Sequence record: NC_019405.1
Reading direction: 5' to 3' (one strand)
DNA length: 64,000 nucleotides
The position numbers were made by a program, and so were the translations under genes. How positions within the stretch are numbered: position 1 is the first letter of the stretch; each line of letters begins with the position of its first letter. The notes beneath the pieces were generated by a model. The model was not told where the DNA came from. It searched no databases and saw only the letters and a program-made list of their open reading frames with translations. Of this stretch, positions 19,453-56,874 are shown one piece after another.

Positions 19453-19468
19453 GTCGTGAATCTTGACA
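19453..19468 (+). promoter_or_regulatory. GANTC/-35 promoter motif before portal
   Basis: GTCGTGAATCTTGACA; inverted copy GATTCACGAC just upstream. Confidence 0.7.
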
Positions 19469-19576
19469 ACCGGGCGTTAACCATGCCATTTTCCCGCCTA
19501 CCTGCCCCACCGGTAGGGCCTCCAACGTCAACTTGGGGAGGATGCGTGCGTCCTCCCCTCCTTCTCCGGGCGCCGC

Positions 19577-21475
19577 ATGGCCGGTCAGACGCCGAACTCC
19601 CTGAACATCTCGCGGGTCGCCCGCGCGACCTCGCAGGCCATCTATCTGGTCACCCATCCTGAGTACCAGCACTGGCGCTCGGAGTGGACCAAGCTGCGCG
19701 ACGTCCTGGCGGGTCAGCGCGAGATCAAGCGCAAGGGCGAGGCCTATCTGCCGGCCATGAAGGGCGCCGACAAGGACGACTACAAAATCTACCTGGAGCG
19801 GGCGACCTTCTTCAACATGCTCGCCCAGACGCGCGATGGCATGACCGGCATGGTCTTCCGCCGCGACCCGTCGATCAAGAACCTGCCGCCCAAGTTCAAG
19901 GACGCCGTGCGGCGCTTCGCCAAGGACGGCTCCTCGCACGCCACTTTCGCCAAGGCGGTCCTGTCGGACCAGTCGGGCATTGGCCGCTACGGCGTCCTGG
20001 TCGACGTCACCGATTCCCCGGTCCGCAACGCCCAGCCGTCAAGCTTCGCGGTCGGCTACGCGGCCGAAAACATCCTCGACTGGGACGAGGTGGTCGACAC
20101 CGCCGGCTTCTATGTCCCCAGCCGCGTCCTGCTGCGCGAATTCGTCCGCGACCTGCGCTGGAAGAGCGACATCGAGCCCCTGACCACCGCCAAGGCCCGC
20201 AAGGCGCGCGCCGAGGCCCTGGCCTCCGGCTCCTCGTCCAGCCCCCTGGTGCGCCAGACCGCCCGCACCCTGGGCGGCTACAGCTACATCACCGTCTATC
20301 GGGAACTGAAGCTCGAAGAGATCGAGTGGCCGTCCGGCGAGGTCAAGCCCGCCTACGTCCAGTACCTCTACGAAGAAGACCCCGAGTCGACGCCGATCGC
20401 CCGCCTCGTCCCCAATGTCCGGGGCGAGCCGCTCGACTTCATCCCCTTCAAGTTCTTCGGCGCCTCGGGCAACACCGCCGACGTCGAAAAGCCGCCGCTG
20501 CTCGACATCTGCGACCTCAACCTGTCGCACTACCGCACCTACGCCGAACTCGAATACGGCCGCCTGTTCACCGCCCTGCCGGTCTATTACGCGCCGGGCA
20601 CCGACAGCGAGGGCACGGGCGAATACCACATCGGCCCGAACATGGTCTGGGAAGTCCCGCAGGGCTCCGAGCCGGGCATCCTGGAATATACCGGCCAGGG
20701 CCTGAAGGCCCTCGAAACCGCCCTCAACGACAAGGAGCGGCAGATCGCCGCGATCGGCGGTCGGATGATGCCCGGCGCCTCCAAGTCGGTGTCGGAGAGC
20801 AACAACCAGACGACCCTTCGCGAGGCCAACGAGCAATCGCTGCTCCTCAACATCATCCAGGCCTGCGAGGCGGGGATGACCGACGTCGTCCGCTGGTGGC
20901 TGATGTGGCGCGACGTGCCGCTCGCCGAGACCCAGGACCTGCGCTACGAGATCAACACCGACTTCCTGTCGACGCCGATCGGCGCGCGCGAGATGCGGGC
21001 GATCCAGCTTATGGCCAACGACGGCCTGCTGCCCGACCCGGTCTTCTACGAGTACATGCGCAAGGCCGAGGTCATCTCCTCGGACATGACCTTCGAGGAG
21101 TTCCAGGAACTGCGCGCCGATCCGGATTCGTTCATCAACAACCCGGACGCCCAGGCCCGCCAGCGCGGCTTCACCAACCGCAGCCAGGAACTCGAACAGA
21201 CCCGCATGGCGCGCGAGGCCGACTTCACCCAGCAGAAGATCGACATCCAGGAGCGCGCGGTCGCCGTCCAGGAAGGTCACGCCGAAGTCGCCCACGCCGT
21301 CGGTTCGACCTCGGTCTCGGCCTCGCGCAAGCTGGGCGATCCCGAGCAGGCCAAGCCGGCGCAGGCCGAGGCCGCCCAGATCGCCAACCAGCGCCGTCAG
21401 ATCAGCAACGCCGCCGCGACCCCGCCGGCGGCGCCGGGCGCTCCCCCCGCCCCGAACCCGAGGACCGCCCGATGA
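19577..21475 (+). CDS. Portal protein (632 aa)
   Basis: DUF4055-like portal pattern (W...RD...G...K..GEAYLP, YL.RA.F.N, PPLLD.C.LNL.HY); size and context. Confidence 0.88.
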   Translation: MAGQTPNSLNISRVARATSQAIYLVTHPEYQHWRSEWTKLRDVLAGQREIKRKGEAYLPAMKGADKDDYKIYLERATFFNMLAQTRDGMTGMVFRRDPSIKNLPPKFKDAVRRFAKDGSSHATFAKAVLSDQSGIGRYGVLVDVTDSPVRNAQPSSFAVGYAAENILDWDEVVDTAGFYVPSRVLLREFVRDLRWKSDIEPLTTAKARKARAEALASGSSSSPLVRQTARTLGGYSYITVYRELKLEEIEWPSGEVKPAYVQYLYEEDPESTPIARLVPNVRGEPLDFIPFKFFGASGNTADVEKPPLLDICDLNLSHYRTYAELEYGRLFTALPVYYAPGTDSEGTGEYHIGPNMVWEVPQGSEPGILEYTGQGLKALETALNDKERQIAAIGGRMMPGASKSVSESNNQTTLREANEQSLLLNIIQACEAGMTDVVRWWLMWRDVPLAETQDLRYEINTDFLSTPIGAREMRAIQLMANDGLLPDPVFYEYMRKAEVISSDMTFEEFQELRADPDSFINNPDAQARQRGFTNRSQELEQTRMAREADFTQQKIDIQERAVAVQEGHAEVAHAVGSTSVSASRKLGDPEQAKPAQAEAAQIANQRRQISNAAATPPAAPGAPPAPNPRTAR

Positions 21476-21798
21476 GCTACCTCCTGTCGCCCTACAAGGC
21501 CCCCGAGCCCGAAGTGGTCGCCGCCCACGCCAAGACCCTCCTGGCCCAGCAGGGCTACAGCGCCCGTGACGCGCTGATCGGGCGCTGCCAGGAAGCGAGC
21601 GTTGATCTGGCCCGCACCGCCGGCCTGAACGTCGCCGAGGCCGCCGAGGTCGGCGAGGAGATCGCCAACTTGCAGCGGCTGGTCGCCGAACTGACCGCCA
21701 CCCAAGCCAAGCTGGAGGCCGAGGGCCGCAGCGCCTACGAAGCCGCCGCCCTCAACGCCGCGACGGCCGTCTATCTGTCGCGCGGCCTGACGCCGTAA
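21472..21798 (+). CDS. Hypothetical protein (108 aa)
   Basis: ATGA overlap with portal. Confidence 0.75.
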   Translation: MSYLLSPYKAPEPEVVAAHAKTLLAQQGYSARDALIGRCQEASVDLARTAGLNVAEAAEVGEEIANLQRLVAELTATQAKLEAEGRSAYEAAALNAATAVYLSRGLTP

Positions 21799-21817
21799 CC
21801 CTAGCTTGCAGAGTAAC

Positions 21818-21997
21818 ATGCCCTCGCGCTACGATTCCCTTGAAGACCTGATGCACGACCTCGATCACGAGGGCATCGTGGACGATGGCTTTGGCGAACT
21901 GGACGAGGAGGACCTGTCCCTTCTCACCCCGCCGGGCAAGAAGACCGCGCCCGCGCCGGCCGCCAAGAAGCGGGGCCGCCCCAAGAAAGCGACCTGA
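21818..21997 (+). CDS. Small acidic/basic protein (59 aa)
   Basis: Ends in an AT-hook-like KKRGRPKK. Confidence 0.65.
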   Translation: MPSRYDSLEDLMHDLDHEGIVDDGFGELDEEDLSLLTPPGKKTAPAPAAKKRGRPKKAT

Positions 21998-22236
21998 TGC
22001 GCCACGCCTCCGCTCGCTGGAACGTCCTGACCGTCCGCCTGGACGACGTCGCCCACTGGGTCGACGAGGTCGACGTGGTCATCACCGATCTGGAGACGGG
22101 CGAGCACCCGCGCGGCGAGGACGGCGAGTTCCTCCCCATTCTGTCGGCGACCCCCGAAACCATCACCCTCTATAACGGCCACGCCATCGCCGGCCGCTAC
22201 GAGATCACCTCCAGCCTTGAGGCGCCCCGTGTCTGA
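21997..22236 (+). CDS. Hypothetical protein (79 aa)
   Basis: TGATG overlap. Confidence 0.65.
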   Translation: MRHASARWNVLTVRLDDVAHWVDEVDVVITDLETGEHPRGEDGEFLPILSATPETITLYNGHAIAGRYEITSSLEAPRV

Positions 22237-22402
22237 GACGACCCTGATCGGCGATCCGAACGCCGAGCGGACCATCGAGGTCCTGGCCATGCACCCCGAC
22301 GAGGCCGCGAGCTTCGTTCCCACGCCCGAGCAGGCCGCCAAGATCGCGGCGGGCGACATGATCATCGGGATCATCCGCTACGGTCCGCCGCCAACGTCGT
22401 GA
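22229..22402 (+). CDS. Hypothetical protein (57 aa)
   Basis: GAGG RBS, GTG start. Confidence 0.55.
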   Translation: MSETTLIGDPNAERTIEVLAMHPDEAASFVPTPEQAAKIAAGDMIIGIIRYGPPPTS

Positions 22403-22450
22403 ATCTTGACACGCCATGTCAGGTGTGATGACGTAGCCCTCGTTAACCAC
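22396..22450 (+). promoter_or_regulatory. GANTC/-35 promoter, extended type
   Basis: GTCGTGAATCTTGACAC...ATGTCA-N7-TGAC...CTCGTTAACCA. Confidence 0.7.
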
Positions 22451-22462
22451 GAGGGCTTTTCC

Positions 22463-22720
22463 ATGACCACCGCCGTCGACATCCAAGCCGCCGGGCACAA
22501 CCTGATCGTCTACCTGACGGACATCTATGTCGTCGACGGCGAAGCCCAGGAGCGCGACTCCATCGAGTTCGTCCGCAAGGGCGCCAAGCGGACCTTCCAC
22601 GTTCACCAGACCCGCGACCTCTATGTGACCGAGGTCCGCGACGCCGAGACCGATCTCAACGCCCTGATCGACGCTGGCGACGAGGCGGCGGCCCGCCAGT
22701 ACATCGCCGAGGCGACTTAA
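22463..22720 (+). CDS. Hypothetical protein (85 aa)
   Basis: GAGGG RBS. Confidence 0.75.
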   Translation: MTTAVDIQAAGHNLIVYLTDIYVVDGEAQERDSIEFVRKGAKRTFHVHQTRDLYVTEVRDAETDLNALIDAGDEAAARQYIAEAT

Positions 22721-22911
22721 GTTCATAGCGGCGCCGATTGCCCAGCGGGCGCATGCCGGACACGCGCTGGGAAACCAAATCGGCCGCGATGCGCGCGAGG
22801 GCTTTTTTGATGCAGGCCTAGCGCGTCAACAGGTGGCGCCGGCTCCTGGGTTCCAGGGGTTCCTTTCAACCTGAATCGCGGCAAGTCCGGGCTCCTTTCC
22901 CAGAGGGCTCC

Positions 22912-23490
22912 ATGAGCGACGATTTCGACAAGCGTTTCGACGAGATGAAGGCGGCCCTGGACGGCGTCGCGCCGGGCCAGCTTCGGCTCCCCTTCCCCGG
23001 ATCGGCCTCGGCTTCGGCCGAGGAGTTGATCCGCCGCTTCTCGGCCCTCAATCCCGCCCCGGCCTTCGTGCTCGGGGCGGCCGTCAAGCTCTCGGACGCC
23101 CCGCCCGAGCCGCTGCTGCGCGACGGCCACGCCGACGAGGTCTTCGTCGACCTGCCGTTCGACCACAAGACGGTGGCCGACTGCAAGGCCAAGTTCGTCG
23201 ACAGCCACAAGGTTCTCCAGGGCTTTTCGGGCGGGGCGGTCGAGGAAGCGGCGCCCAAGATCACGATCCAGGTCTATCTCAAGAACGGGCAGGTGCGCGA
23301 GTACGACGTCGACACCCAGGCCGCCGCCCGCGAGCACGCCTACGAGATCATCCAGACCGGCTACCGCGCCGTCGACGAGGCCGACCCCACCGTCCTGACC
23401 CACTGGCCGCCGCACGAGATCAAGAAGGTCAAGATCAAGGCGCCCGCGCCGTGGACGACCCGCTTTTTCGACCGCGTGCGGGGCACCTGA
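22912..23490 (+). CDS. Hypothetical protein (192 aa)
   Basis: GAGGG RBS. Confidence 0.8.
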   Translation: MSDDFDKRFDEMKAALDGVAPGQLRLPFPGSASASAEELIRRFSALNPAPAFVLGAAVKLSDAPPEPLLRDGHADEVFVDLPFDHKTVADCKAKFVDSHKVLQGFSGGAVEEAAPKITIQVYLKNGQVREYDVDTQAAAREHAYEIIQTGYRAVDEADPTVLTHWPPHEIKKVKIKAPAPWTTRFFDRVRGT

Positions 23491-23726
23491 TGACCACCGC
23501 GTTCGACGCCGTCCTCGCCCGGATCGAGTCCGGCGAGCCCTTTACCTATGCCGGCCTGAGCGCGGTCAACGACGCGGCTGGCGGGAACGAGGCGCGCGAC
23601 CGGCTGGCCGACCGCACGATCCAGAAGTACCGCCGCAAGGGCTGGATCACCTTCACCCGCGAGGGCCGCTACGTGGTCTGGCGTCCGACGCCGGCCGGCG
23701 CCGCCCAGTTCAACCTCCAAGCTTAG
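23490..23726 (+). CDS. Small winged-helix-like protein (78 aa)
   Basis: TGATG overlap; RTIQKYRRKGWITF...W..TPAG wHTH-like pattern. Confidence 0.65.
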   Translation: MTTAFDAVLARIESGEPFTYAGLSAVNDAAGGNEARDRLADRTIQKYRRKGWITFTREGRYVVWRPTPAGAAQFNLQA

Positions 23727-23736
23727 GAGCCCGTCC

Positions 23737-24120
23737 ATGTGCGTTGTTTCCGCCGTGATGGACTACGGCCGCCGGCAATGGCCCGACCTGATGGGGCCGG
23801 GCGGTCCGACCATCGTGCCGGGCGTGGATCAGCCCTGGTTCGAGATCGTCTCGCCCGGCCTGCCCCCGGCCCCGGTTCACCCCAAGCCCAAGGTCCCGAC
23901 TCGCGCTGAGATCGAGGCTTTCCGCCGGCTGGTCCAGGCCGCCAATGAATTCGACCAGCAGACCGGCCAGCCCCACTGCGAGGACCCCGAGAAGATCAAG
24001 CTGCTCGACGCGATCAACAAGCTGGCCGATCGCCTCGACGCCATCGAAAAGCGTCTCGCCGCCCAGGACAGCGCCGACGCCGAGGACGCGGCGGCGATCA
24101 CCGCCTCGGTCGAGACGTGA
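23737..24120 (+). CDS. Hypothetical protein (127 aa)
   Basis: AGGAG RBS. Confidence 0.75.
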   Translation: MCVVSAVMDYGRRQWPDLMGPGGPTIVPGVDQPWFEIVSPGLPPAPVHPKPKVPTRAEIEAFRRLVQAANEFDQQTGQPHCEDPEKIKLLDAINKLADRLDAIEKRLAAQDSADAEDAAAITASVET

Positions 24121-24362
24121 GCGTCTTCGATCTCCCGGCCGACGGCTTTGATCGCCGCAAGCCACTCTACCGGGTCTTCAACATCGACGGCGAGAAGCAG
24201 TGGTGGACGGTGATCGCCGCCCTCAACGCGCCGGGCCGCCGCTGCACCAAGCAGGAGGCCATGGGCTGCGAGGACTATGTCGCCGCCCATGCCTGGGCCG
24301 AGCACTTCTGGAACTGTTACGCCGCCACTGGCAAGGCGACCATCTACGAGAGCACGCGATGA
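24117..24362 (+). CDS. Hypothetical protein (81 aa)
   Basis: GTGA overlap. Confidence 0.65.
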   Translation: MSVFDLPADGFDRRKPLYRVFNIDGEKQWWTVIAALNAPGRRCTKQEAMGCEDYVAAHAWAEHFWNCYAATGKATIYESTR

Positions 24363-24643
24363 AACTCACCGTCAGCGGTCAGGACATGAGCGGGACCGAG
24401 ACCGTCTATCTGATGCTGGTCCCCCGCGTGGGCGTGCGCCTGGAGAGCGACAAGCCCGTCACCCTGACCTTCGATCCGCTGCCCGGCGCGGCCGGCGCCG
24501 TCAGGGTCGATCCCAAGACCCCCCTGACCCTGGCCGAGAACCCCAAGCCGAGCGAACTGCGGCTGCTGCCGGCCGGCGCCGAGCAGGTCTTCTACCTCAA
24601 CGCCAATGGCCGCTGGATGGTGACCTTCAGGGAAGAGCCGTGA
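24359..24643 (+). CDS. Hypothetical protein (94 aa)
   Basis: ATGA overlap. Confidence 0.7.
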   Translation: MKLTVSGQDMSGTETVYLMLVPRVGVRLESDKPVTLTFDPLPGAAGAVRVDPKTPLTLAENPKPSELRLLPAGAEQVFYLNANGRWMVTFREEP

Positions 24644-24879
24644 AACCGGCCCAGCCCATGCCCAACGGCATGCCGTTCGGGCGCGACGGCTTCCCGCGCG
24701 TCGAGAAGATCGACGCGGTGCGCAACATCGTCACCTTCCATACCGGCGAGACGGCCCCGATCACCAGTTACCTCGCCGGCGGCGAGGAGGTCGGCAACCC
24801 GCTGCGCGCCCAGGTCATCGTCTGCGGCCCCTATCGCGGCAAGTGGCTGGTCATTCCGGTCGAGGAGGGTGACATTTGA
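24640..24879 (+). CDS. Hypothetical protein (79 aa)
   Basis: GTGA overlap. Confidence 0.65.
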   Translation: MKPAQPMPNGMPFGRDGFPRVEKIDAVRNIVTFHTGETAPITSYLAGGEEVGNPLRAQVIVCGPYRGKWLVIPVEEGDI

Positions 24880-25115
24880 GCCGCCCCCGCAGCGTCACCG
24901 AAGTCCTCTGCGACGACTTCCGCGCCCTCCTGACCACGGGCTTCTACGTCACCGACGAGCATGGCGAGGTCCATGGACCGGGCACCCCGCTGGGCGATGC
25001 GGCCCTGGCGGCGACCAAAGCGTGGCGCGGCGATCTCTGGAAGGCCTTCCGCCCGATCGACGACAGCATGTGCCCGGTCCGCGTCCACGAGCGCGAAGCC
25101 GCCAAGCGTCCATGA
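24876..25115 (+). CDS. Hypothetical protein (79 aa)
   Basis: GAGGAGG RBS, TTGA overlap. Confidence 0.65.
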   Translation: MSRPRSVTEVLCDDFRALLTTGFYVTDEHGEVHGPGTPLGDAALAATKAWRGDLWKAFRPIDDSMCPVRVHEREAAKRP

Positions 25116-25483
25116 CCCATCGTCCCTCGGCCTATCTCCGGACCCCGCCGATGCGCTATCCCGGCCCTTCCGGCTTCGACGAACGGCTGCACCGGGCCGA
25201 CGGGCGCGCGACGCGGCTTTTGGTCGCGCCGCATCTGGCCTGGGCGCTCCACCAGCTACGGCGCTATGGTTCGCCGATCGACTGGCTCTTGCCGGCGACG
25301 CGCGAGGGCCTCGTCGCGCCGGGCGATCGCCCATTCGGCCAGAAGACGGTGCGTCTCAAGCTCGGCCGCCGGCGGCTGACCCGCCTGGGCGACTACCTCG
25401 AATACATGCAGTTCGCGAGTGATGTGGACCTTGCAACCTACAAGCAGTGGCTGAAGGAGACGCCGATTTTTCCGGTGTCGTGA
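25112..25483 (+). CDS. Hypothetical protein (123 aa)
   Basis: ATGA overlap. Confidence 0.65.
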   Translation: MTHRPSAYLRTPPMRYPGPSGFDERLHRADGRATRLLVAPHLAWALHQLRRYGSPIDWLLPATREGLVAPGDRPFGQKTVRLKLGRRRLTRLGDYLEYMQFASDVDLATYKQWLKETPIFPVS

Positions 25484-25530
25484 TTCTTGACACCCTATGT
25501 CGTCTGTGGTGACATCCGCTCGTTAACCAT
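25477..25530 (+). promoter_or_regulatory. GANTC/-35 promoter, extended type (paralogue of 22396)
   Basis: GTCGTGATTCTTGACAC...ATGTCG-N7-TGAC...CTCGTTAACCA. Confidence 0.7.
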
Positions 25531-25894
25531 GACGGGCTCCCTGATGATCCGCCTGACCAAATCCCAGCACTACACGAACACGGCGGAGAACGACCGTAGC
25601 TGGTACCTCGATCCGGGCCTGACCTTCGAGGTCCACGGCCTGCCGCCCGTCAAGCCGGAGCAGAAGATTGGCTACCCGGACGCCGGCGCCCTGGTCTGTG
25701 TGAATGGCGAGGCCCACTATGTCGACGAGGATGTCGAAACCATCCTCACCTTGATCAAGATCGCGCGGAACCCGCAGCGCTATCGACTGGCGACGGACGA
25801 GGGGAAGCTGATCGCCCACGAGGACCTGATCTACCTCGGCTACTCGGACGGCTCGTTCGATTACGGCCTGATGGGCGAGGAGCGCTACCAGTGA
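25529..25894 (+). CDS. Hypothetical protein (~121 aa; start uncertain)
   Basis: ORF directly after promoter. Confidence 0.7.
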   Translation: MTGSLMIRLTKSQHYTNTAENDRSWYLDPGLTFEVHGLPPVKPEQKIGYPDAGALVCVNGEAHYVDEDVETILTLIKIARNPQRYRLATDEGKLIAHEDLIYLGYSDGSFDYGLMGEERYQ

Positions 25895-30464: not shown

Positions 30465-30505
30465 GTCGTGAATCTTGACATTCGGCGAATTTTTTGCTAG
30501 GTTCC
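30465..30505 (+). promoter_or_regulatory. GANTC/-35 promoter for the head operon
   Basis: GTCGTGAATCTTGACA-16-CTAGGT. Confidence 0.7.
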
Positions 30506-33160: not shown

Positions 33161-33190
33161 CCCCCGGACCCTGGTCCGGGGGTTTTCTTT
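33161..33190 (+). terminator. Rho-independent terminator
   Basis: CCCCGGACC/GGTCCGGGG plus TTTTCTTTT. Confidence 0.8.
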
Positions 33191-33314
33191 TGGTCGCTAT
33201 GGCCCAGAAATGTCGTGAATCTTGACACAAGGGCCGTTTCATGCCAGAAGTCAAGTCTCTTTTGAGCGCGGCATAGAAGGGCCGTGCCGGTCTCCCCCGA
33301 AACGGAAAATCCCC

Positions 33315-46623: not shown

Positions 46624-47400
46624 ATGGCGATCCAGAACCCCCATTCCACCACGCCCGGCGCCATGCCGCACCTGACGCCCGGCGAGATCGGCGTCAACAA
46701 GGCCGACGACATCCTCTGGTTCCGCTCGCAGGGGCGCCGCGTGCCGATCATCCTGAGCGACCTTGACCGCGCCCCGCCGGCGGACGGCTATGTCGGCGCG
46801 CCCCTGACCCTGGTGGACGGCGCGCCGGCCTGGAACGTCAAGCTCTTGCCGTCCTCGATCGTCTCCGGCGCGGTCAAGGTCGATCTCCCGCCCGCCGCCG
46901 GGCTACACGCCGTGCCGAGCGTCCTGCTCCAGGGCCTGGGGGCCGATCGCGCCCTGGCGGCCAATGATCTGGACCTCACCCCCTTCTATGTCCGCTCCGA
47001 CTCCATCACCCTGACCCATCTGGCCTTCAGCGTGCGCTCGGCGGGCGCGCCGGCCATGCGCGTGGGGATCGTCGACAGCTTCGGCGTCGTCCAGGCCGAC
47101 ATCCTGGTCGCCGCGCCGGTCGTGGGGGCCAATGTCGTGGCTCTCTCGCCGGTCCTGACTCTCCAGCGCGGCGTCTACCGCACCATCCTGGCGACGACCG
47201 GGGCGGTGACCGTGGGGATCGCCACGGGCGCGCGCATGGAGCAGGGCTGGGACATCATCGCCGACGCGCCGTCGTTCATCCGGGGCTACAGCGGCAGCAA
47301 GAACACCGGCGGCGGTATCGGGAGCCTGCCGGCGCTGACCCCGCGCCGCGATCCCACGCCGGGCCAGGATCACGCCGTCCTCCTGCGCTGGACGGCGTGA
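46624..47400 (+). CDS. Fibre-associated protein (258 aa)
   Basis: N-terminal STTPG.MP.LTPGEIGVN motif; C-terminus similar to the end of the giant protein. Confidence 0.8.
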   Translation: MAIQNPHSTTPGAMPHLTPGEIGVNKADDILWFRSQGRRVPIILSDLDRAPPADGYVGAPLTLVDGAPAWNVKLLPSSIVSGAVKVDLPPAAGLHAVPSVLLQGLGADRALAANDLDLTPFYVRSDSITLTHLAFSVRSAGAPAMRVGIVDSFGVVQADILVAAPVVGANVVALSPVLTLQRGVYRTILATTGAVTVGIATGARMEQGWDIIADAPSFIRGYSGSKNTGGGIGSLPALTPRRDPTPGQDHAVLLRWTA

Positions 47401-47462
47401 ATCTTGACACTCGGTCGAAATACGGTTAACCTGCGCGCTCATCTGGAGTTTCGAGCGCCATC

Positions 47463-48837: not shown

Positions 48838-49335
48838 CTAGAAAGTTTGGGCCTGGAACGCCCCCATAATGATGCCCGGAGAGGCATGTTCGATGAGCCA
48901 GTGGCGCCCCATCCAGCGAAGGAAGGCGGACAATGGCGTAATGTCTTCAGCGCCAGTCTCTTGATCGAAGGGCAAGATCGCGGACAAGCGAATCTCAAGG
49001 ATTCTACCATAGCTGTTGATGTTCGGATCAGGAGCGGTTGGATAGTAGAACAAAGGAGCGTGATAGATCGCCGGAGCCTGTGCTATGAGCTTAATGGGAG
49101 GCACTTGTATCGGCTCCTGATCCGCCATCGGGAAGGCGATCTTGGAGAACGTCAGGAGGAGGGTATCGCCGATCTTTTCACCGGGAGCGATAACACCCCA
49201 GCGATAATCGGCCGGCCCCGGAGGCGTTCCTGTCTCGGAGAAGGGCTCGGGAATGACATTGACGAGGCTCTCCCCATTCGGGTTCACGAACTCCGCCTTG
49301 TCGAAAGTCGCCGCGCGCAGGATTTTGTAGGACAT
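48838..49335 (-). CDS. Hypothetical protein, lower GC, inverted (165 aa)
   Basis: AGGAG RBS on the minus strand; atypical codons. Confidence 0.65.
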   Translation of the reverse strand: MSYKILRAATFDKAEFVNPNGESLVNVIPEPFSETGTPPGPADYRWGVIAPGEKIGDTLLLTFSKIAFPMADQEPIQVPPIKLIAQAPAIYHAPLFYYPTAPDPNINSYGRILEIRLSAILPFDQETGAEDITPLSAFLRWMGRHWLIEHASPGIIMGAFQAQTF

Positions 49336-49539
49336 AAGCTGCTCCTAAGGTTGAGACGTCCCATCGCTATCGGATTCGGTCCTCGGCTGACAGTGAATAT
49401 TTTTCTCACGACGTGCTTGACATTCGTTTGAAGTTGTGAGAGCCTGTCCAACGTCACGGATCACGACACTCCTCGGAGTGCAAAAGCGCGATCCTTCGTT
49501 ATTCCCAGGCCGCCAGCGGGCGGCCGTTCGAGAGCTATC

Positions 49540-50420: not shown

Positions 50421-50505
50421 GCCGGTCTGGCGGAAATGGCAGACGCAGTGGCTTCAAGTCCCACCGCCTTCGGGCGTCCCGGTTCGAGGCCGGGGACCGG
50501 CACCA
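50421..50505 (+). tRNA. tRNA-Leu(CAA)
   Basis: Loop TTCAAGT, type II. Confidence 0.88.
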
Positions 50506-50510
50506 TTTGA

Positions 50511-50599
50511 TGCGAAGTGGCGGAACTTTGGTAGACGCACCGGCATGAGAGGCCGGCGCCCTTCGGGGCGTGAGGGTTCGAGTCCCTTCTTCGCGACCA
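50511..50599 (+). tRNA. tRNA-Leu(GAG)
   Basis: CCGGC-ATGAGAG-GCCGG, type II. Confidence 0.85.
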
Positions 50600-50606
50600 A
50601 TATCAT

Positions 50607-50678
50607 GCCGGACGGCGCAGGCGCGCGGGGGAGGTTGTGTCCCTCCTTGGCTCCGATCGTTACGGAGGTTCGGTTCCA
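50607..50678 (+). tRNA. Degenerate tRNA-His(GTG)-like element
   Basis: GCCGGAC/GTTCGGT acceptor plus CCA; GGAGG-TTGTGTC-CCTCC; CTCCG-ATCGTTA-CGGAG T arm. Confidence 0.55.
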
Positions 50679-50682
50679 TTAC

Positions 50683-50753
50683 GGGGTATGCGCAGGGCGC
50701 AGGCATCCTTTGCAAGGAAGTCGGGGTGGGTTCGAGTCCCACATACTCCACCA
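50683..50753 (+). tRNA. tRNA-Ala(TGC), reduced D arm
   Basis: G3.U70 acceptor; loop TTTGCAA. Confidence 0.75.
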
Positions 50754-50757
50754 ACAT

Positions 50758-50845
50758 GGTAGGTTGGCTGAGAGGCCGAAGGCGCCCGTTTCGAAAACGG
50801 GAGGACCGCAAGGTTCCGTGGGTTCGAATCCCACACCTACCTCCA
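50758..50845 (+). tRNA. tRNA-Ser(CGA)
   Basis: CCCGT-TTCGAAA-ACGGG, type II, U73. Confidence 0.9.
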
Positions 50846-50849
50846 ACAT

Positions 50850-50937
50850 GGATGTATGGCTGAGAGGCCGAAGGCGCCCGCTTGGAAAGCGGGTGAACCG
50901 CAAGGTTCCGTAGGTTCGAATCCTACTGCATCCGCCA
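50850..50937 (+). tRNA. tRNA-Ser(GGA)
   Basis: CCCGC-TTGGAAA-GCGGG, type II. Confidence 0.9.
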
Positions 50938-50941
50938 ACAG

Positions 50942-51028
50942 GGTAGGTGGTTCCGGCCTGGGGCCGGACCCGGTTGCTAACCGGCCGGAGCCGCAAGGCT
51001 TGGGGTTCGATTCCTCCTCCTACCGCCA
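50942..51028 (+). tRNA. tRNA-Ser(GCT), probable 8/4 fold with extended D stem
   Basis: CCGG-TTGCTAA-CCGG; D stem TCCGGC/GCCGGA. Confidence 0.8.
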
Positions 51029-51340
51029 TTTCGGTGTTGACACCCGCAACGCGGCCTGTCATACGTCACGACAGAGCGAACACCCCCCGGCCGGGTTTGT
51101 TGTCATACCGGGTCGTCACGCCCCGTCGGGGCTCTAGTAGCTCTTCGTGTGGAGTTTTCCGCCTCCCTCCCAGACAAGGAGGCGGACCCAACCAACATCG
51201 CGATCTCCCGTGATCGTCGGCGACGGGCGCCGTCAGAGACCTTTGCCTGCGCGGCTCCGCTGCGGCCCTGGTCTCGTCCCGACCAAATTTTTTCGTCGTG
51301 GTGCTTGACACTGCGAAACTGTTCTGCTAGGGTTCACGTC

Positions 51341-51439
51341 ATGAGCAAGACCTATCGTCAATTTGTGCGCCAGATTCAGGTCGTCCGGAATATCCGGGCG
51401 GGCCGCTCGCGCATGGCTGACGAAGGGTTCCGGGACTAG
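51341..51439 (+). CDS. Candidate near-leaderless small protein (32 aa, MSKTYRQFVRQIQVVRNIRAGRSRMADEGFRD)
   Basis: ATG 6 nt after TGCTAGGGT -10 of a TTGACA promoter; terminator 51468-51501. Confidence 0.45.
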   Translation: MSKTYRQFVRQIQVVRNIRAGRSRMADEGFRD

Positions 51440-51540
51440 GTCCCACTCCACGTTCAACCAGTTTCGCGAAGGCCCGCCTGGACACCCAGGCGGGCCTTTT
51501 CGCATTTCAGCTTCAGATCACGGAGATCGCCAACAGACAC

Positions 51541-51625
51541 GGATGCTTAAAGCTGGAGGGCTCCAGCCGGGGACTGTAAATCCCCTCTCTTCGGAGGAGT
51601 GGTTCGATCCCACAAGCATCCACCA
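51541..51625 (+). tRNA. tRNA-Tyr(GTA), 8/4 fold with 6-bp D stem
   Basis: GGATGCTT/AAGCATCC acceptor; GTGG/CCAC T stem; GGGGA-CTGTAAA-TCCCC. Confidence 0.85.
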
Positions 51626-51630
51626 ACCAC

Positions 51631-51706
51631 GGACTCGTAGCTCAGCAGGTAGAGCGCCGGCTTGAAACCCCGGAGGTCGGAGGTTCGATTCCTCCCGTTT
51701 CCACCA
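51631..51706 (+). tRNA. tRNA-Phe(GAA)
   Basis: Loop TTGAAAC; two acceptor mismatches. Confidence 0.8.
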
Positions 51707-51711
51707 ACAAC

Positions 51712-51787
51712 GCCCGATGAGCCAGATGGGAAGGCGCCGCCGTGACATGGCGGGATTGAGAAGGTTCGATTCCTTCATCAGGCACCA
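51712..51787 (+). tRNA. tRNA-Val(GAC)
   Basis: CCGCC-GTGACAT-GGCGG. Confidence 0.8.
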
Positions 51788-51789
51788 AT

Positions 51790-51865
51790 GCAAGTGTAGC
51801 TCAGTCGGTAGAGCAGCGGACCGATAATCCGCCTGTCCCTGGTTCGAGTCCAGGCATTTGCACCA
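51790..51865 (+). tRNA. tRNA-Ile(GAT)
   Basis: GCGGA-CCGATAA-TCCGC (C33). Confidence 0.85.
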
Positions 51866-51872
51866 ATTCTGA

Positions 51873-51947
51873 TGTGGCATAGCTCAGGGGTAGAGCGCGC
51901 GCTTGATAAGCGTGAGGTCGGGGGTTCGAAGCCCTCTGCCACTACCA
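51873..51947 (+). tRNA. tRNA-Ile(GAT), second copy
   Basis: CGCGC-TTGATAA-GCGTG. Confidence 0.85.
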
Positions 51948-51980
51948 GTTTCCAGGCCGGCGGAGATGCGCCGGACCTGA

Positions 51981-52056
51981 TGGCGTTTAGCATAGTGGGA
52001 GTGCAGGGGTGTCACATACCTCGATCGAACTGGTTCGATTCCAGTAACGCCAACCA
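51981..52056 (+). tRNA. tRNA-Val(CAC)
   Basis: GGGGT-GTCACAT-ACCTC. Confidence 0.8.
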
Positions 52057-52061
52057 ATCGT

Positions 52062-52135
52062 TGAGGGTTCGTCTAACGGTAGGACGGCTGGGTCTGGTCC
52101 AGCTAATCTAGGTTCGAGTCCTAGCCCCTCATCCA
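52062..52135 (+). tRNA. tRNA-Gln(CTG)
   Basis: GCTGG-GTCTGGT-CCAGC. Confidence 0.85.
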
Positions 52136-52142
52136 AGCTTGT

Positions 52143-52216
52143 TCTCGGGTGGTCTAATGGTAAGACATCTGGTTTTGGTCCAGAGGATTGGGGTTCGATT
52201 CCTTGGCCGAGAACCA
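52143..52216 (+). tRNA. tRNA-Gln(TTG)
   Basis: TCTGG-TTTTGGT-CCAGA. Confidence 0.85.
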
Positions 52217-52231
52217 ACTATTTGAGTTTAT

Positions 52232-52306
52232 TCCAGTCAATGCACAAGGTGTGCAGCGGCACTGTTAATGCCTGTGAGCCCGGTTCGATTCCGGGGTCTG
52301 GAGCCA
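52232..52306 (+). tRNA. tRNA-Asn(GTT)
   Basis: GGCA-CTGTTAA-TGCC. Confidence 0.85.
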
Positions 52307-52332
52307 ACACGTCGGCCTCGGCCGGCACATGC

Positions 52333-52415
52333 GCCCTGGTAACCGAGGGGGATTACGAATCCCTTAGTCGTAGCAGGAGTTGAAAAGGGTGGTTCGAATC
52401 CACTCCAGGGTGCCA
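52333..52415 (+). tRNA. D-armless tRNA-Arg(ACG)-like element with ~23-nt variable loop
   Basis: GCCCTGG/CCAGGGT acceptor plus GCCA; GGGA-TTACGAA-TCCC; GGTGG-TTCGAAT-CCACT. Confidence 0.65.
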
Positions 52416-52422
52416 AATTCAT

Positions 52423-52505
52423 AGCGCGCAGGCCGAGCAGGATCATCGTCAGGCGTCGCCCTCCGAAGGCGAAGAGGCCCGGTTCGAGTCCGGGGCGCGC
52501 TGCCA
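52423..52505 (+). tRNA. tRNA-Arg(CCG) with enlarged D loop
   Basis: TCGCC-CTCCGAA-GGCGA; AGCGCGC/GCGCGCT acceptor. Confidence 0.75.
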
Positions 52506-52508
52506 TTC

Positions 52509-52586
52509 GCGCGGGTAGCTCAATGGACCCAGAGCAGCCGTCTTCCACACGGAAGGTTGGGGGTTCGAATCCCTCCCCGTGCGCCA
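52509..52586 (+). tRNA. tRNA with Gly(TCC) anticodon, G3.U70 pair and G73
   Basis: GCGCGGG/CCCGTGC acceptor; CCGT-CTTCCAC-ACGG. Confidence 0.75.
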
Positions 52587-52949
52587 AACTTGACGGGCGA
52601 TGCCGAATCGCTCAGCTTCCCGATTGGCTCTCGATGGGCCGCCACTGCACGCCGCCGGCGCCCTCCCGGTACAAGGAGGGGCGCACGTCGGCGACGTTCC
52701 AACCCAGTTCCGGACGATCTTCGAACGCGGCCTGCCGTGGAGGGGTGCTGGAAGGGCCGGGGTTGTGGAAACCGTCGAGCATCTCCTACTCCGGATCGGG
52801 CCTCCTGGGGGCTCCTCCGGTCAACCAGGGCCTGACCCGACCCCGGAGATGCGCCGTCTACGATCACCCAGGACCGTCCTGGCGGTGGAAAGGGTCTGAA
52901 ATTTTTCTGGCGCTGATGTGTTGACACTCCTCGGAGGCTCGGCTAAAAC

Positions 52950-53052
52950 CAGCAGCGTCAGAGCGGCGTTGGACCACGAGGTCCGCCGCGAGCTTCTGCG
53001 TTGTCGTCAGGAACGGCCCGCCAGCAATCCCGCTGGCGGGTCGTTTCGTTTT
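52950..53052 (+). ncRNA. Candidate ~100-nt small RNA
   Basis: TTGACA (52921)/GCTAAA promoter, long hairpin, terminator CCCGCCAGC-AATCCC-GCTGGCGGG plus T-tract; no ORF. Confidence 0.5.
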
Positions 53053-53172
53053 GGGCGCAATGCGACGTTCAGTCCAACCATGGGTAGTGTCATGAATCTT
53101 GACTTTCGGCTCTTATTCCGGTAGCTTTCCCGACATCAGCAAACGCTCACAAGTCGGGGACCGAGAGCCGTC

Positions 53173-53589
53173 ATGTCGCAAGACCACAACGGCTCGTCCT
53201 CGGGCCAAGAACGCATCTACCAGAAACTGGATGAGCTTGGCTCCATGCACGCGCGCACCCGTGAAGATATTGCCCGCATCCAGGAGATGATGCGAGCCGT
53301 CGGTTCGTCGCAGGAGCGGATCGAAAAGCGCCAGGACCATTTCGAGCGCGAAATCTGGCGTGAGATGGAAGACCGCGCCGCGCGCACGAGCGCCCAACTC
53401 GACGAAATCAAGAGCCACACCAACCTGCGCATCGAGGAGATCGAGGCCAAGGTCGACACGATCCGCGAGGAGCGGATCGCCGAAAAGGCCCAGTGGCGCG
53501 GCCCCGAGAAGGCCATCGCCGCCCTGGTCGCCGTCGCCGGGGCCATCGCCGCCTTCGCCACCATCCTCACTTTCCTGAAGGGACACTAG
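53173..53589 (+). CDS. Coiled-coil protein with C-terminal TM helix (138 aa), possible holin-like
   Basis: GAGAG RBS; after GANTC promoter at 53089. Confidence 0.8.
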   Translation: MSQDHNGSSSGQERIYQKLDELGSMHARTREDIARIQEMMRAVGSSQERIEKRQDHFEREIWREMEDRAARTSAQLDEIKSHTNLRIEEIEAKVDTIREERIAEKAQWRGPEKAIAALVAVAGAIAAFATILTFLKGH

Positions 53590-53696
53590 GATTTATAGTC
53601 AAGCTTGGGTGCCTGCGGCCAGAAGTCGCGCTTCTTGACACCCGATCTGGGCCGGCATAACCATAGGGCCATCATTCCTGGGTGGAGTTTTCCCTA

Positions 53697-53903
53697 ATGG
53701 CTGTCGCGCTTACTGTCGTCTCGGTTGAGACCGAATCTACCATCCAAGGTGTTGACCCCGACGCGGCGCATGTCCGCCTGATCGAGGTCCTGCATACCGC
53801 CGCAGAAGCGGGTCTTGGGGAAATGACGTTGGAAGTCAAAGCGGAGATCGCGGCGCTGCTCCAGCAGGCGTCCGTGGAACTCTCCCACTGCCGGCCGGTG
53901 TAG
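53697..53903 (+). CDS. Hypothetical protein (68 aa)
   Basis: GGAG RBS; TTGACA promoter at 53635. Confidence 0.65.
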   Translation: MAVALTVVSVETESTIQGVDPDAAHVRLIEVLHTAAEAGLGEMTLEVKAEIAALLQQASVELSHCRPV

Positions 53904-53937
53904 GGGTCCCGTAAATCGCCATCCCAGAGGGAGCGAC

Positions 53938-54804
53938 GTGTCCGAGTCTGCTGAGTTCAACCCGCTCGACCAAAATCAGTTCCCTCCTCGCCTCACCAAG
54001 GCTGCTGCGCGACAGGCGCGGCGCCAGGAGCGCAGCCAGAAAAAGGACCCCACGGCCAACAAGCCGAACTACAAGGCGCTCGAAGCCAAGACCGAACGCC
54101 AACGGCGCTATATCCAGGCCCTCAAGGCCGGTGAAAGCGTCATCGCTATTGGTGGGGCCGGCACGGGGAAGACCTATATCCCGTCCCGGCTCTTCGCCAA
54201 GAAGCTGATCGAAGCGAAGATCGAACGCCTGATCATCGCCCGCGTCACCGCCTCGCGCCCCAAGCACGCCCTGGGCTTCCTGCCCGGCAAGCTGGAAGCC
54301 AAACTCGCCCCGTGGCTCGTCCCGGTGATCGAGGGCGTCAAGGCCGAGATGAACGCCCAGACCTACACCCAGTTGCAGGAAGCCGGCAAGATCGAGTTCG
54401 CCTCGTTCGAGCATATGCGGGGCCGGACCTTCGCCGAGTGCTGCGTCCTCCTCGACGAGGCGCAGAACGCCGACTACAAGGACCTGAAGATGGTCCTGAC
54501 CCGCTGGGGCGAGAACGCCCAATACGCGGTCACCGGCGACGTCGACCAGATCGACGTCGACGATTCGGGCCTGGAGACGGTCGTCGACATCGTCGAGACC
54601 CACGACATCCCGATCCACGTGATCGAGTTCACCGACGAGGATGTCGTCCGCTCGCCCATGGCCAAGGCCTGGGTCAAGGCGTTCTCCGCCCACGAGGGCA
54701 AGGACGGACGGACGCGGCGCTTCCATCGCCCCACTGTCAGGAATCTTGACGTCTTGCCGGCTTTTATCGATAATGGCCGAGTCACGAAACCCGTGGCGTC
54801 GTGA
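53938..54804 (+). CDS. phoH: PhoH-like ATPase
   Basis: GGAGTGKT, LGFLPGKLEAK, MRGRTF, LLDEAQN, GDVDQID, DVVRS. Confidence 0.95.
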   Translation: MSESAEFNPLDQNQFPPRLTKAAARQARRQERSQKKDPTANKPNYKALEAKTERQRRYIQALKAGESVIAIGGAGTGKTYIPSRLFAKKLIEAKIERLIIARVTASRPKHALGFLPGKLEAKLAPWLVPVIEGVKAEMNAQTYTQLQEAGKIEFASFEHMRGRTFAECCVLLDEAQNADYKDLKMVLTRWGENAQYAVTGDVDQIDVDDSGLETVVDIVETHDIPIHVIEFTDEDVVRSPMAKAWVKAFSAHEGKDGRTRRFHRPTVRNLDVLPAFIDNGRVTKPVAS

Positions 54805-54821
54805 CAAAGACGTAGCGCACC

Positions 54822-55343
54822 ATGGCCTTCACCTTCGTTGTTGAGACTGGCGCCGGGGACCCGGCCGCGAACTCGTACTGCGACGTGCAGTTCGCGGACG
54901 ACTACATCTACGCCAATGTCTACGCCAACACCGCCTGGGACGCGCTGGATCAGGATGGCAAGGAACGCTTCCTGGTCCGGGCGTCCAAGTACCTCGACCG
55001 CACGATCGCCTGGGCCGGGGAGAAGGTCGACGAGGATTCCGGCCTGCGCTGGCCGCGCGCCGGGGTCTACGACATCGACGGCTTCCTGATCCCCAGCGAC
55101 GCGATCCCGCAGCAACTCATGGAGGCCACCGCCGAGATGGCGGCGGCCCTCATGAACAACGACTGGACCTCGCCGCAGACCACGCGCGGCATGAAGGAAA
55201 TCCAGGTCGACGTCATCGAACTGAAGTTCGACAGCGAAATCCAGCGCGGCTCCATGCCCGACATCGTCATGTCGATCCTCGAAGGTCTGGGGGTCGTCAA
55301 GACCGGCACCCGCCCGGCCTTCAAGAAGATCATTCGCCACTAA
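54822..55343 (+). CDS. Head-tail connector/adaptor (DnaT-like domain family)
   Basis: VETG.G...ANSY..V..AD.Y, L.RAS.YLD, L.WPR, IP..L..A.AE.A. Confidence 0.8.
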   Translation: MAFTFVVETGAGDPAANSYCDVQFADDYIYANVYANTAWDALDQDGKERFLVRASKYLDRTIAWAGEKVDEDSGLRWPRAGVYDIDGFLIPSDAIPQQLMEATAEMAAALMNNDWTSPQTTRGMKEIQVDVIELKFDSEIQRGSMPDIVMSILEGLGVVKTGTRPAFKKIIRH

Positions 55344-55735
55344 TGGCCCTCGAAGCCTTCATCCGTTCCCAGGTCGTCATCGCCTTCAACCAGCTTGACG
55401 ACATCGCCAAGCGCTGGACCTACGTCCAACGCTCGGGCGATCCGGTGCGTGATGTCGAGAGCGGCGTGACCACCTATCCTTCCACCGAGATCGTCATTCC
55501 CAAGGCGGTCAAGGTGCGGTTCAAGAAGGACGAGAAGGACGCCCACGGCCAGACCCTGGTGGGCGAGAAGGTCCTGTTCCCCCGCGTCTTCCTGCCGGGC
55601 GACTTCGAGACCGCGACCTCCGACTACCTCGTCGACCAGAACGACATCATCTGGGAGATCATCAGCGACCTGGGTGACCCGGCCTCGGCGCTGGCGATGT
55701 TCCAGGTCCGCAGCACGCGGAAGAAGACCCCGTGA
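55343..55735 (+). CDS. Head closure / stopper-type protein (130 aa)
   Basis: Position after adaptor; beta-rich. Confidence 0.65.
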   Translation: MALEAFIRSQVVIAFNQLDDIAKRWTYVQRSGDPVRDVESGVTTYPSTEIVIPKAVKVRFKKDEKDAHGQTLVGEKVLFPRVFLPGDFETATSDYLVDQNDIIWEIISDLGDPASALAMFQVRSTRKKTP

Positions 55736-56205
55736 AGTCGGGCGGAGCCAAGCTCAGCTTCTACACCGACGGGAACCTGGAGGCGGCGTTCAAGCGCTTC
55801 TTCGCCACCGCCGAGAAGCGCTATGACGAGCGGGCCGATCGCCTGCTGATCAAGCTGAACGAACTGATCCTGGCCCGCACCCCGGTGTGGGAAGGCGACA
55901 CCATCCACAACTGGCGCTGGTCGACGCGCGCCCCGGACATGCGCCACGAGGCCCCGCTCGACAATGGCGATCCGGGCCGCACGAGCGAGATGGACCTGGG
56001 CCAGGAGCCGCGCCGCCGCGTCAACGAGACGCGCCCCCGCCAGTCGCTGGCCGGCGCTCTGCGCGCCAAGGAGCCGATCGACATCTATCTGACCAACACC
56101 GCCGAGAGCGCGGTCGATCTCGAATACGGCCTGCTCCCGACCAGGGCGCAGAGCCGAAACAAGATGGGGATGGTCCGAATCTCGATTAAAGAGGTGTTCG
56201 GATGA
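55732..56205 (+). CDS. Neck/tail completion protein (HK97 gp10-like position, 157 aa)
   Basis: RTPVW.G...NW, Y.TN..E...LEYG. Confidence 0.7.
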   Translation: MKSGGAKLSFYTDGNLEAAFKRFFATAEKRYDERADRLLIKLNELILARTPVWEGDTIHNWRWSTRAPDMRHEAPLDNGDPGRTSEMDLGQEPRRRVNETRPRQSLAGALRAKEPIDIYLTNTAESAVDLEYGLLPTRAQSRNKMGMVRISIKEVFG

Positions 56206-56276
56206 TCCCCGCCTTCATCATCCTGCCGCGCGTCTATCTCGCCGCGTGGCTGTCGTTTTGGCTGGGAGAGGACTGA
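56202..56276 (+). CDS. Coupled 24-aa hydrophobic peptide (MIPAFIILPRVYLAAWLSFWLGED)
   Basis: ATGA overlap upstream and TGATG overlap downstream. Confidence 0.55.
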   Translation: MIPAFIILPRVYLAAWLSFWLGED

Positions 56277-56731
56277 TGCTCGAACACGACATGCTCCGGC
56301 AAGTCCTGGAGCAGCAGGCCGTCGCCGCTGCCCCGACGATCGGGCTGAAGCTGAACTTCGACAACTCCGAATTCGTCCAGCCCAAGGACGGTGCGCACTG
56401 GGCTGAGTTCTGGGTCCAGACGGGCAACACCGTGCCCTGCGAGGTCGCTGGCCCGCGCGGCTACGAAAAGACCTCGGGCCTGATCCAGTTCACGCTCAAG
56501 GCCCCTGAGGAAGAAGGCAACGGCGCGATCCTCAAGAAGGCCGGCGCGCTCAAGAAGGTCTTCAACCGCCGCCAATGGGTCGTGCCGCCGGACGGCTATG
56601 TCACTCTCGACCCGATCTCGGTCCAGTCGCACGGCAAGCCGATCGACGGCTTCTATAATGTCGTGGTCTGGGCGACCCTCTGGTTCCACCACCGCGATCC
56701 CGACGCCGACGATCGCTGGATTCGCGGTTGA
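56276..56731 (+). CDS. Tail terminator protein (DUF4128-like, 151 aa)
   Basis: FDN..F..P....W, G..Q......G.G pattern; precedes the tube gene. Confidence 0.75.
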   Translation: MLEHDMLRQVLEQQAVAAAPTIGLKLNFDNSEFVQPKDGAHWAEFWVQTGNTVPCEVAGPRGYEKTSGLIQFTLKAPEEEGNGAILKKAGALKKVFNRRQWVVPPDGYVTLDPISVQSHGKPIDGFYNVVVWATLWFHHRDPDADDRWIRG

Positions 56732-56874
56732 CCGCGTCTTTCACACCGGCTAAGGTCGTGAATCTTGACATTTCCCAAAGTCTAGGGTAGGGTCACCACA
56801 CTTGCGATGCAGGGCCGGGTCGGCACGCTCGCTGACCCCCTTTTGTCACAAAACCGTGGATTGGTGACCTGCCC

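Follow-up and report, generated by a model that had tools for sequence, protein, structure and literature searches.

The first 64 kb of Caulobacter phage phiCbK (JX100813 / NC_019405, bases 1–64000; identical coordinate for coordinate to the whole stretch analysed here, which is referred to below as the window) carry nine copies of a 16-base box in which a GANTC site, the target of the methyltransferase CcrM, directly adjoins a TTGAC -35 element. The reading favoured here, held at a probability of roughly 0.45, is that the box marks delayed promoters of the host RNA polymerase, and that a lineage-specific block in its 5' part most likely docks a phage-encoded regulator. PhiCbK is the standard phage of a leading bacterial cell-cycle model, and its transcription programme is without described cis-elements; the papers searched contained no description of this box. 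The two sharply defined promoter classes reported below provide a map for the published infection time course, together with a short list of candidate regulators.

In the proposed mechanism, the 3' part of the box (AATC followed by TTGACA) would be an optimal, slightly extended -35 element, a looser form of which appears to be common to all CbK-like phages. The 5' part (GTCGTG, about -45 to -40) would be the lineage-specific docking block, where a phage DNA-binding regulator is predicted to sit beside sigma region 4 and to set the timing of the delayed class, by activation or by repression. The GANTC would arise where the final G of the block meets AATC, a position that would also be the centre of a 15-base near-palindrome.

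The box and two classes of promoter

The window comprises the left terminal repeat and early genes (1–19 kb), the head and neck genes, a tRNA island (24 tRNAs according to ARAGORN) and the first tail genes. The initial annotation had listed the box at nt 19453, 22396, 25477, 30465, 33212, 47394, 53089, 54736 and 56755, and it is present at all nine, always on the plus strand and ahead of the next gene. Six copies are the same at all 16 bases (19453, 22396, 25477, where the N is T, 30465, 33212 and 56755), while the copy at 47394 deviates at one base, that at 53089 at two (one in the 5' block and one at position 16), and that at 54736 at three (two in the 5' block and one at position 16). GANTC adjoins TTGAC in each of the nine, as had been stated. 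The accompanying statement that only the N varies is correct inside GANTCTTGAC (A in eight copies, T in one) but does not extend to the five bases 5' of GANTC, which differ at three of the nine sites. Searching the window with the 15-mer and allowing up to three mismatches gave 23 matches, relative to 2.3 expected from shuffled sequences, and no shuffle reached 23. Checked against NC_019405, the genes that follow the boxes include those for the portal, the scaffold and capsid, gp079 together with tRNAs, the head-tail adaptor and a tail protein of 610 residues; of the remaining boxes, three are followed by small unnamed genes and one by a series of head-associated genes. The nine boxes begin 67–193 nt from the start codon.

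The list of nine, all of them real, proved incomplete. A genome-wide scan of the full NC_019405 record recovered 20 GANTC-bearing boxes, 11 of them beyond the window, along with 4–5 variants that lack GANTC. Those beyond the window precede tail genes (65669, 71806), the endolysin gene (78366) and, in the replication module, minus-strand genes (five boxes: 86956, 87913, 94017, 101269 and 107245); two more are near a divergent site at 113 kb (113273, 115692), and the last, at 200176, heads an operon ending in the terminase genes. NrdA, a helicase and a methyltransferase are also encoded behind these out-of-window boxes. All 20 point at the next annotated gene and start 46–193 nt before it, and the genome-wide scan found none in 1–19 kb or 116–200 kb. 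The outer parts of the box without GANTC recur at 51295, 53625, 80504 and 198304, and weakly at 49467 (minus strand).

When the 20 sites are aligned, positions 1–16 are near-invariant (GAATC in 19 of 20), and farther downstream a preferred base is evident in just three columns (G at 32, 15/20; A at 35, 14/20; T at 39, 13/20). These columns are a Caulobacter-type -10 element, separated from TTGACA by a 17-bp spacer, so that a sigma70-type core of -35 and -10 is shared across the 20 sites. Transcription would start about 46 nt from the start of the box, and with the start placed in this way from the -10, GANTC lies at about -40 to -36. The -10 elements of the delayed class are weaker and heterogeneous, with a mean match to the Caulobacter -10 of 4.25, relative to 4.91 in the early class described below and a background of 3.3. 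A strict scan for E. coli-type promoters in the 19–34 kb region called none of the sites, because their -10 elements are of the Caulobacter type and not TATAAT-like; the evidence for the -10 is therefore found in the column counts. The description of these sites as sigma70 promoters (sigma70/73-type) is borne out by the -10-like signal at a fixed 17 bp, by their orientation with the next gene and by conservation that is confined to the box (see below).

A second class of promoter, with about 22 copies, is confined to the early, box-free regions. Its members combine a CTGGCG-like element with GTG immediately in front of TTGACA, a good GCTAGAAG-type -10 and a conserved leader whose 3' end is a ribosome-binding site (GGAGG); none of the approximately 22 has the box. 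Two copies are located in the tRNA island of the window, 51034 (nt 51016–51079) and 52918 (nt 52900–52963), and further copies lie between 113254 and 196488 of NC_019405. One member (156560, minus strand) heads an operon in which tgrL is the third gene. According to infection RNA-seq, tgrL is transcribed early, and structural and lysis genes are middle/late (PMC10688885); this published timing was used at the level of gene modules. Since the signatures of the two classes differ, and since tgrL is early and the structural and lysis genes later, it is the sequence before the -35 that separates the two classes, and the box denotes the delayed one. The same box, at a fixed distance, serves one set of genes (the structural, lysis, terminase and replication modules), and the other temporal class carries a different signature, GTG before TTGACA. 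An early-type promoter (113254, minus strand) heads the replication module, whose boxes are internal; this arrangement fits the reported early onset of the module. The initial proposal of middle/late timing agrees with these observations, as the box class sits in modules that are middle/late by RNA-seq (PMC10688885) and is absent from the early regions.

Conservation among CbK-like phages and a candidate regulator

Six orthologous promoters of phage Rogue and four of phage Bajun were compared with those of phiCbK, anchored on the box. Identity to phiCbK within the box is 99% for Rogue and 92% for Bajun, relative to 36% and 27% in the 40 nt upstream, and 76–89% and 41–67% downstream. The box is a sharply bounded island of conservation. 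The relatives compared share a common plan in their delayed promoters: a block six to thirteen bases long comes first, then an A/T-rich linker, mostly with TC as its last two bases, and then TTGACA. Rogue (host Caulobacter) has the same block as phiCbK (GTCGTG), with GANTC next to the -35 in 6/6 promoters, and Bajun (host Brevundimonas) has nearly the same block, with GANTC in 5/7. In Colossus and CcrPW (host Caulobacter CB15) the block is TGCCAG and GANTC adjoins the -35 in 2/6; in CcrSC, also on CB15, the block is different and GANTC occurs in 0/5. The block of Kabachok (host Brevundimonas) contains TGCC (GANTC in 1–2/6), and that of RpAliso (host Ruegeria) is different again (0/4). The block varies by phage lineage and not by host, with five or six blocks in six lineages: three lineages with different blocks infect a single strain, CB15, and similar blocks recur across host genera. 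The phiCbK lineage, with its nearly uniform GAATC, has a far stricter linker than the other lineages. A scan of viral sequences returned contigs with multiple copies of the box only for CcrBL10, Rogue and Karma, and among the matches listed for bacterial genomes there were only single chance matches in unrelated taxa.

The first ten bases of the box are also found separately from TTGAC. Two such units lie upstream of the portal promoter, and a third, in opposite orientation, makes up a ten-base inverted repeat that separates the divergent peptidase and portal promoters. Tandem units occur upstream of the 94017 and 115692 boxes, and the unit forms 15-base near-palindromes at 98011 and 137896, the latter without GANTC. 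The promoter box itself is a half-palindrome: its right half, which holds the -35, mirrors the left half at 5/7 positions, with GANTC at the centre of the dyad. In these respects the ten-base unit behaves like a putative protein site.

The best candidate for a protein that would read it is a 266-residue helix-turn-helix (HTH) protein of the XRE type, encoded outside the window after the dUTPase gene (NC_019405 80860–81660, minus strand). The gene is present and syntenic in 57/57 CbK-like records and is annotated as ImmR or LexA-like in some of them. The C-terminal part is cI/LexA-like, with no Ser at the G-D-S-M position, and a Pfam search recognised the HTH only. The putative recognition helix is identical between phiCbK and Rogue. 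Colossus and Kabachok, which infect different hosts but have TGCC in common in their blocks, likewise share one helix; the helices of CcrSC and RpAliso are different, and that of Bajun is intermediate. As the block follows the phage lineage and not the host, and tracks the helix of this protein, a phage-encoded reader would be the likeliest. The gap upstream of the HTH gene contains, in four lineages, an early-class-like promoter with TTGCCA. TgrL was also tried as reader; its published matrix is unlike the box, and its scores near the boxes are no better than in random windows. Four other HTH proteins were compared by phyletic profile, and none is restricted to the lineages with a GTCGTG block.

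Several points weigh against a phage regulator docked at the block. The helix of Bajun differs from that of phiCbK although the two blocks are nearly the same, and the co-variation of helix and block, seen across five or six lineages, is imperfect and no more than suggestive. The cI/LexA-like character of the C-terminal part is putative, being drawn from a reading of the alignment and from the annotation of other records. Conserved upstream blocks are found in the early class as well, though only the host polymerase is available at entry; a conserved block by itself is therefore no proof of a phage factor. The -35 is of consensus type, so these promoters could fire unaided, in which case the regulator may act as a repressor or be unneeded. 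Finally, the strict linker of the phiCbK lineage is compatible with some additional constraint, for which methylation is one possibility.

Individual sites in the window

The portal gene (start at 19646) is preceded by a delayed-class promoter at nt 19453–19491 (plus strand, as are all nine), with the box at 19453–19468, GANTC at 19458–19462, the -10 region at 19486–19491 and a TTAAC at 19477; it is kept in both Rogue and Bajun. Upstream, the region between the divergent peptidase and portal genes carries two plus-strand ten-base units without TTGAC (19190–19199 and 19231–19240). A third unit, on the minus strand (19436–19445), is separated by seven bases from the unit of the portal box (19453–19462), and the resulting inverted repeat (19436–19462) is placed between divergent promoters; it is not conserved in Rogue. 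A plain promoter-like site, TTGACG-17-TAGCTT (19393–19421, minus strand), faces the peptidase gene and lies 14 nt downstream of the minus-strand unit. The possibility that the box is generally the 3' arm of terminator hairpins was rejected, as it is true only for this inverted repeat.

The promoters of gp047 (start 22463; nt 22396–22434) and gp056 (start 25544; nt 25477–25515) have boxes that overlap the ends of gp046 and gp055, respectively. The former has an orthologue in Rogue. The latter is the sole GATTC copy, and of its orthologues that of Rogue retains GATTC and that of Bajun is without GANTC. Right after the -10 of these two promoters are hairpins with a TTAACCA loop, one an annotated terminator (22436–22456) and the other at about 25517–25537. 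Transcripts from upstream would stop there, and those of the box promoters would begin inside the hairpin.

The scaffold and major capsid genes (start 30609) have a promoter at nt 30465–30503 with the -10 TAGGTT, kept in Rogue and Bajun, and that of gp070 (start 33315; nt 33212–33250) lies 3' of a terminator (33161–33182). The promoter of gp079 (start 47463) and the first tRNA cluster (nt 47394–47432) has a box starting with GGC and the -10 TAACCT. Further on, the box of gp334 (start 53173; nt 53089–53127) starts with GTCAT and follows a terminator (53010–53047), that of the head-tail adaptor gene (start 54822; nt 54736–54774) starts with GTCAG and is within the 3' end of a PhoH-like gene, and the promoter of the 610-residue tail protein gene (start 56875; nt 56755–56793) has the -10 TAGGGT.

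Three variants of the class are located in the window. One without GANTC (nt 51295–51333, plus strand) keeps the outer block and TTGACA, differs in the middle four bases and has a good -10, TAGGGT; another, before gp333 (start 53697; nt 53625–53663, plus strand), keeps the outer parts, also without GANTC. The third (nt 49429–49467, minus strand) is weak (GATCC, GTGAC) and tentative, and is found 5' of the one gene in the region that is on the minus strand (48838–49335). Beyond the window, the GANTC-less variant at 80504 is 3' of the last gene of the lysis cassette, with no annotated gene before a terminator at 80812–80835. Between the early-class promoter 52918 and the annotated terminator 53010–53047, no more than about 90 nt away, there is no gene, and the promoter could give rise to a small RNA; Rfam had no match in 52918–53047. 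Across 47–54 kb Rfam recognised tRNAs and nothing else. Two tRNAs, tRNA-Ala(tgc) at 50683–50753 and tRNA-Ile(aat) at 52232–52306, are ARAGORN calls only, absent from RefSeq and below the Rfam tRNA threshold.

The GANTC site, alternative explanations and known systems

The initial annotation took the embedded GANTC to be a switch, methylated by CcrM and read by GcrA. In the host, GcrA sites are at -20 ± 1, -30 ± 2 or +5 to +30, and none further upstream, which was ascribed to linker length (PMC4647560, PMC9976885); the protein is a monomer tethered to sigma70 domain 2 (PMC9976885) and promotes open-complex formation (PMC4647560). At ctrA P1 the GANTC is at -29/-28, and host promoters with GANTC outside -35 to -10 are not activated at GcrA time (PMC4287350). 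The preferred flank is YGAKTCK, with AGATTCA ranking 32nd of 32 contexts. The phage sites, at about -40 to -36, are off-position, and 19 of the 20 boxes carry exactly the lowest-ranked flank (TGAATCT, equivalent to AGATTCA); only that at 25477 (TGATTCT) fits. Nor is GANTC a conserved determinant among relatives on the same host, being mostly lost in the CB15 phages Colossus/CcrPW (2/6) and CcrSC (0/5). The search for a GcrA homologue in the rest of the genome, suggested at the outset, was successful: one is present (Pfam GcrA, 5e-25), and its alignment with C. crescentus GcrA covers the two domains of the latter. The gene has a plain promoter and is located in a region of early type. Such a gene was found only in Shapirovirus and Poindextervirus; Bajun has the box without one, and 4–5 class promoters of phiCbK itself are without GANTC, which weakens the proposed switch further. 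The operon of the GcrA-like gene is preceded by TTGTCA-17-TAGGGT (NC_019405 about 160150–160260, minus strand), a site formed by the reverse complement of the GTGTTGACA boxes of two divergent early promoters. Given the losses of GANTC among relatives and the case of Bajun, GANTC is dispensable for the promoter architecture and not tied to a phage GcrA gene, and the embedded CcrM site is more readily seen as a side effect of the construction of the box than as a demonstrated methylation switch.

The distribution of GANTC across the genome is relevant here. It is depleted, with 125 sites in the window relative to 152–308 expected, depending on the model, and 279 in the unique genome relative to 433–644, i.e. 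about 0.4–0.65 of expectation or 1.36 per kb. The promoter boxes account for ~7% of all GANTC sites of the phage. The density is close to that of the host (4542 sites per genome). The phage encodes two methyltransferases. An amino-methyltransferase of 204 residues with FAGNG and NPPY motifs is encoded behind a box promoter (segment L002:36539–37153, minus strand, where L002:16504 corresponds to NC_019405 80504); as a phage CcrM it was rejected, since searches of Pfam, NCBIfam and PDB gave no match and PHROG only a partial one, and it is not CcrM-like. A C5 cytosine methyltransferase (segment L002:32933–33991, minus strand) is not CcrM-like either. The ccrM mRNA persists during infection of unsynchronised cultures (1.3–1.5 fold).

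In its strongest form, the methylation model would have GANTC at about -38 methylated by CcrM or a phage enzyme and read by GcrA, most plausibly by the early-made phage paralogue acting as a sigma70 cofactor, with methylation state or paralogue level timing the class. It is judged unlikely, although the presence of GANTC in 20 of about 25 class promoters, despite its genome-wide depletion, is in its favour, as are the DNA-binding and sigma-interacting domains retained by the paralogue, its early-type location and the persistence of ccrM mRNA. A factor that helps open-complex formation (PMC4647560) would suit promoters with a consensus -35 and weak, heterogeneous -10 elements, a site centred at -38 has roughly the same helical phase as those at -20 and -30, and GANTC is strictest in the two genera that carry the paralogue. 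As this paralogue has both domains and an early-type location, it is a possible reader in those two genera. The idea that it has been retargeted to TGAATCT centred at about -38, a context and position ignored by host GcrA, is rather improbable; if true, the phage would own a private methylation-gated sigma70 cofactor that turns on ~20 delayed promoters and makes late transcription depend on the methylation or replication state of its DNA. The position, flank and host-promoter data described above argue against GcrA, as do the box of Bajun and the mostly GANTC-less architecture of Colossus, CcrSC, Kabachok and RpAliso. Besides the class members without GANTC, two palindromic or tandem units lack it, the ten-base unit forms dyads whereas GcrA is a monomer, and the N is nearly always A, which CcrM does not require. 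The losses of GANTC among relatives apply equally to a model in which N6-methyladenine at about -39/-37 shifts the affinity of the reader of the box, or of sigma region 4, so that replicated and unreplicated phage DNA would be transcribed differently, with a delay coupled to replication. GANTC does lie inside a putative protein site and beside the -35, and the 204-residue NPPY enzyme is itself encoded behind a box promoter, but no family search finds that enzyme CcrM-like, and this model seems quite improbable. Dam-sensitive promoters are one precedent for methyl sites in core promoters; ctrA P1 is another (PMC4287350). By itself, the embedded CcrM site is no evidence of epigenetic control.

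A further explanation dispenses with a dedicated reader: the box would be an intrinsic high-affinity contact of the host holoenzyme (an extended -35 plus an UP-like element), and timing would have another source, for instance CtrA bound at TTAAC(C) or competition with the early promoters. TC before TTGACA is said, after Hawley and McClure in 1983, to belong to the general sigma70 -35 consensus, and an A/T-rich linker usually ending in TC recurs in all lineages. TTAAC, on the same strand and within 50 nt after the -35, is found in 10 of 24 delayed promoters relative to 0.23 expected, and in none of the early class. It usually takes the form TTAACC followed by ATG or ACG, at positions ranging from spacer to leader; copies of TTAAC(C) in the window are at 19477, 22443, 25523 and 47426, with more beyond it, and others in delayed promoters of Colossus, CcrSC, Bajun and Rogue. 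In the host, a CtrA half site over the -10 is repressive (PMC4287350), and CtrA binds and regulates other phiCbK promoters (PMC9437464). TTAAC(C), which resembles a CtrA half site, may bring cell-cycle input to the delayed class, and its enrichment connects the delayed genes with the proposal that the host cell cycle is sensed by these phages. Yet only 10 of the 24 have it, at variable positions; the host polymerase cannot explain why the 5' block differs among phages of the same strain, and the ten-base unit is found as dyads and repeats away from any -35. A promoter without a dedicated reader is likewise considered unlikely. Far less probable still is the notion that the boxes are not promoters and serve packaging, recombination or replication. 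The strict E. coli-type scan called none of them, but it was not built for Caulobacter-type -10 elements, and all boxes are co-oriented with the next gene, 46–193 nt ahead of it, with TTGACA and a -10-like element at 17 bp; several follow terminators.

Several known systems resemble these promoters in some respects. The GcrA/CcrM-dependent promoters of C. crescentus (ctrA P1, mipZ and csM; PMC4647560, PMC3667746, PMC9976885) are similar in being of sigma70 type with GANTC near the core, and the phage has a two-domain GcrA homologue. The phage site differs in its position (about -38), in its lowest-ranked flank and in that GANTC is not kept in sister phages. The CtrA-controlled promoters and proposed lytic deferment of phiCbK-like phages (PMC4287350, PMC9437464) are matched by the enrichment of TTAAC(C) in spacer, -10 or leader across several genera; the published CtrA sites of phiCbK are upstream of gp005 and gp018 at the left genome end, and the boxes are another element. 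Outside of Caulobacter, activation of the class II type next to the -35 is represented by lambda cI at PRM and by Mu Mor at the middle promoter. As in those systems, a dyad-like putative site adjoins or overlaps the -35, the candidate is an XRE-type HTH protein with a cI/LexA-like C-terminal part, and one promoter class would be switched together; unlike them, the -35 of phiCbK is consensus and not weak, only half of the dyad is kept at the promoters, and the regulator is a candidate. In T4 middle promoters, where the MotA box replaces the -35 in concert with sigma appropriation by AsiA, the temporal class is similarly set by a box upstream of a host-type -10, but in phiCbK the -35 is retained and extended; relatives of MotA or AsiA were not encountered, though no search aimed at them was made. 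The box is a new element of a known kind, a class-specific phage promoter signature.

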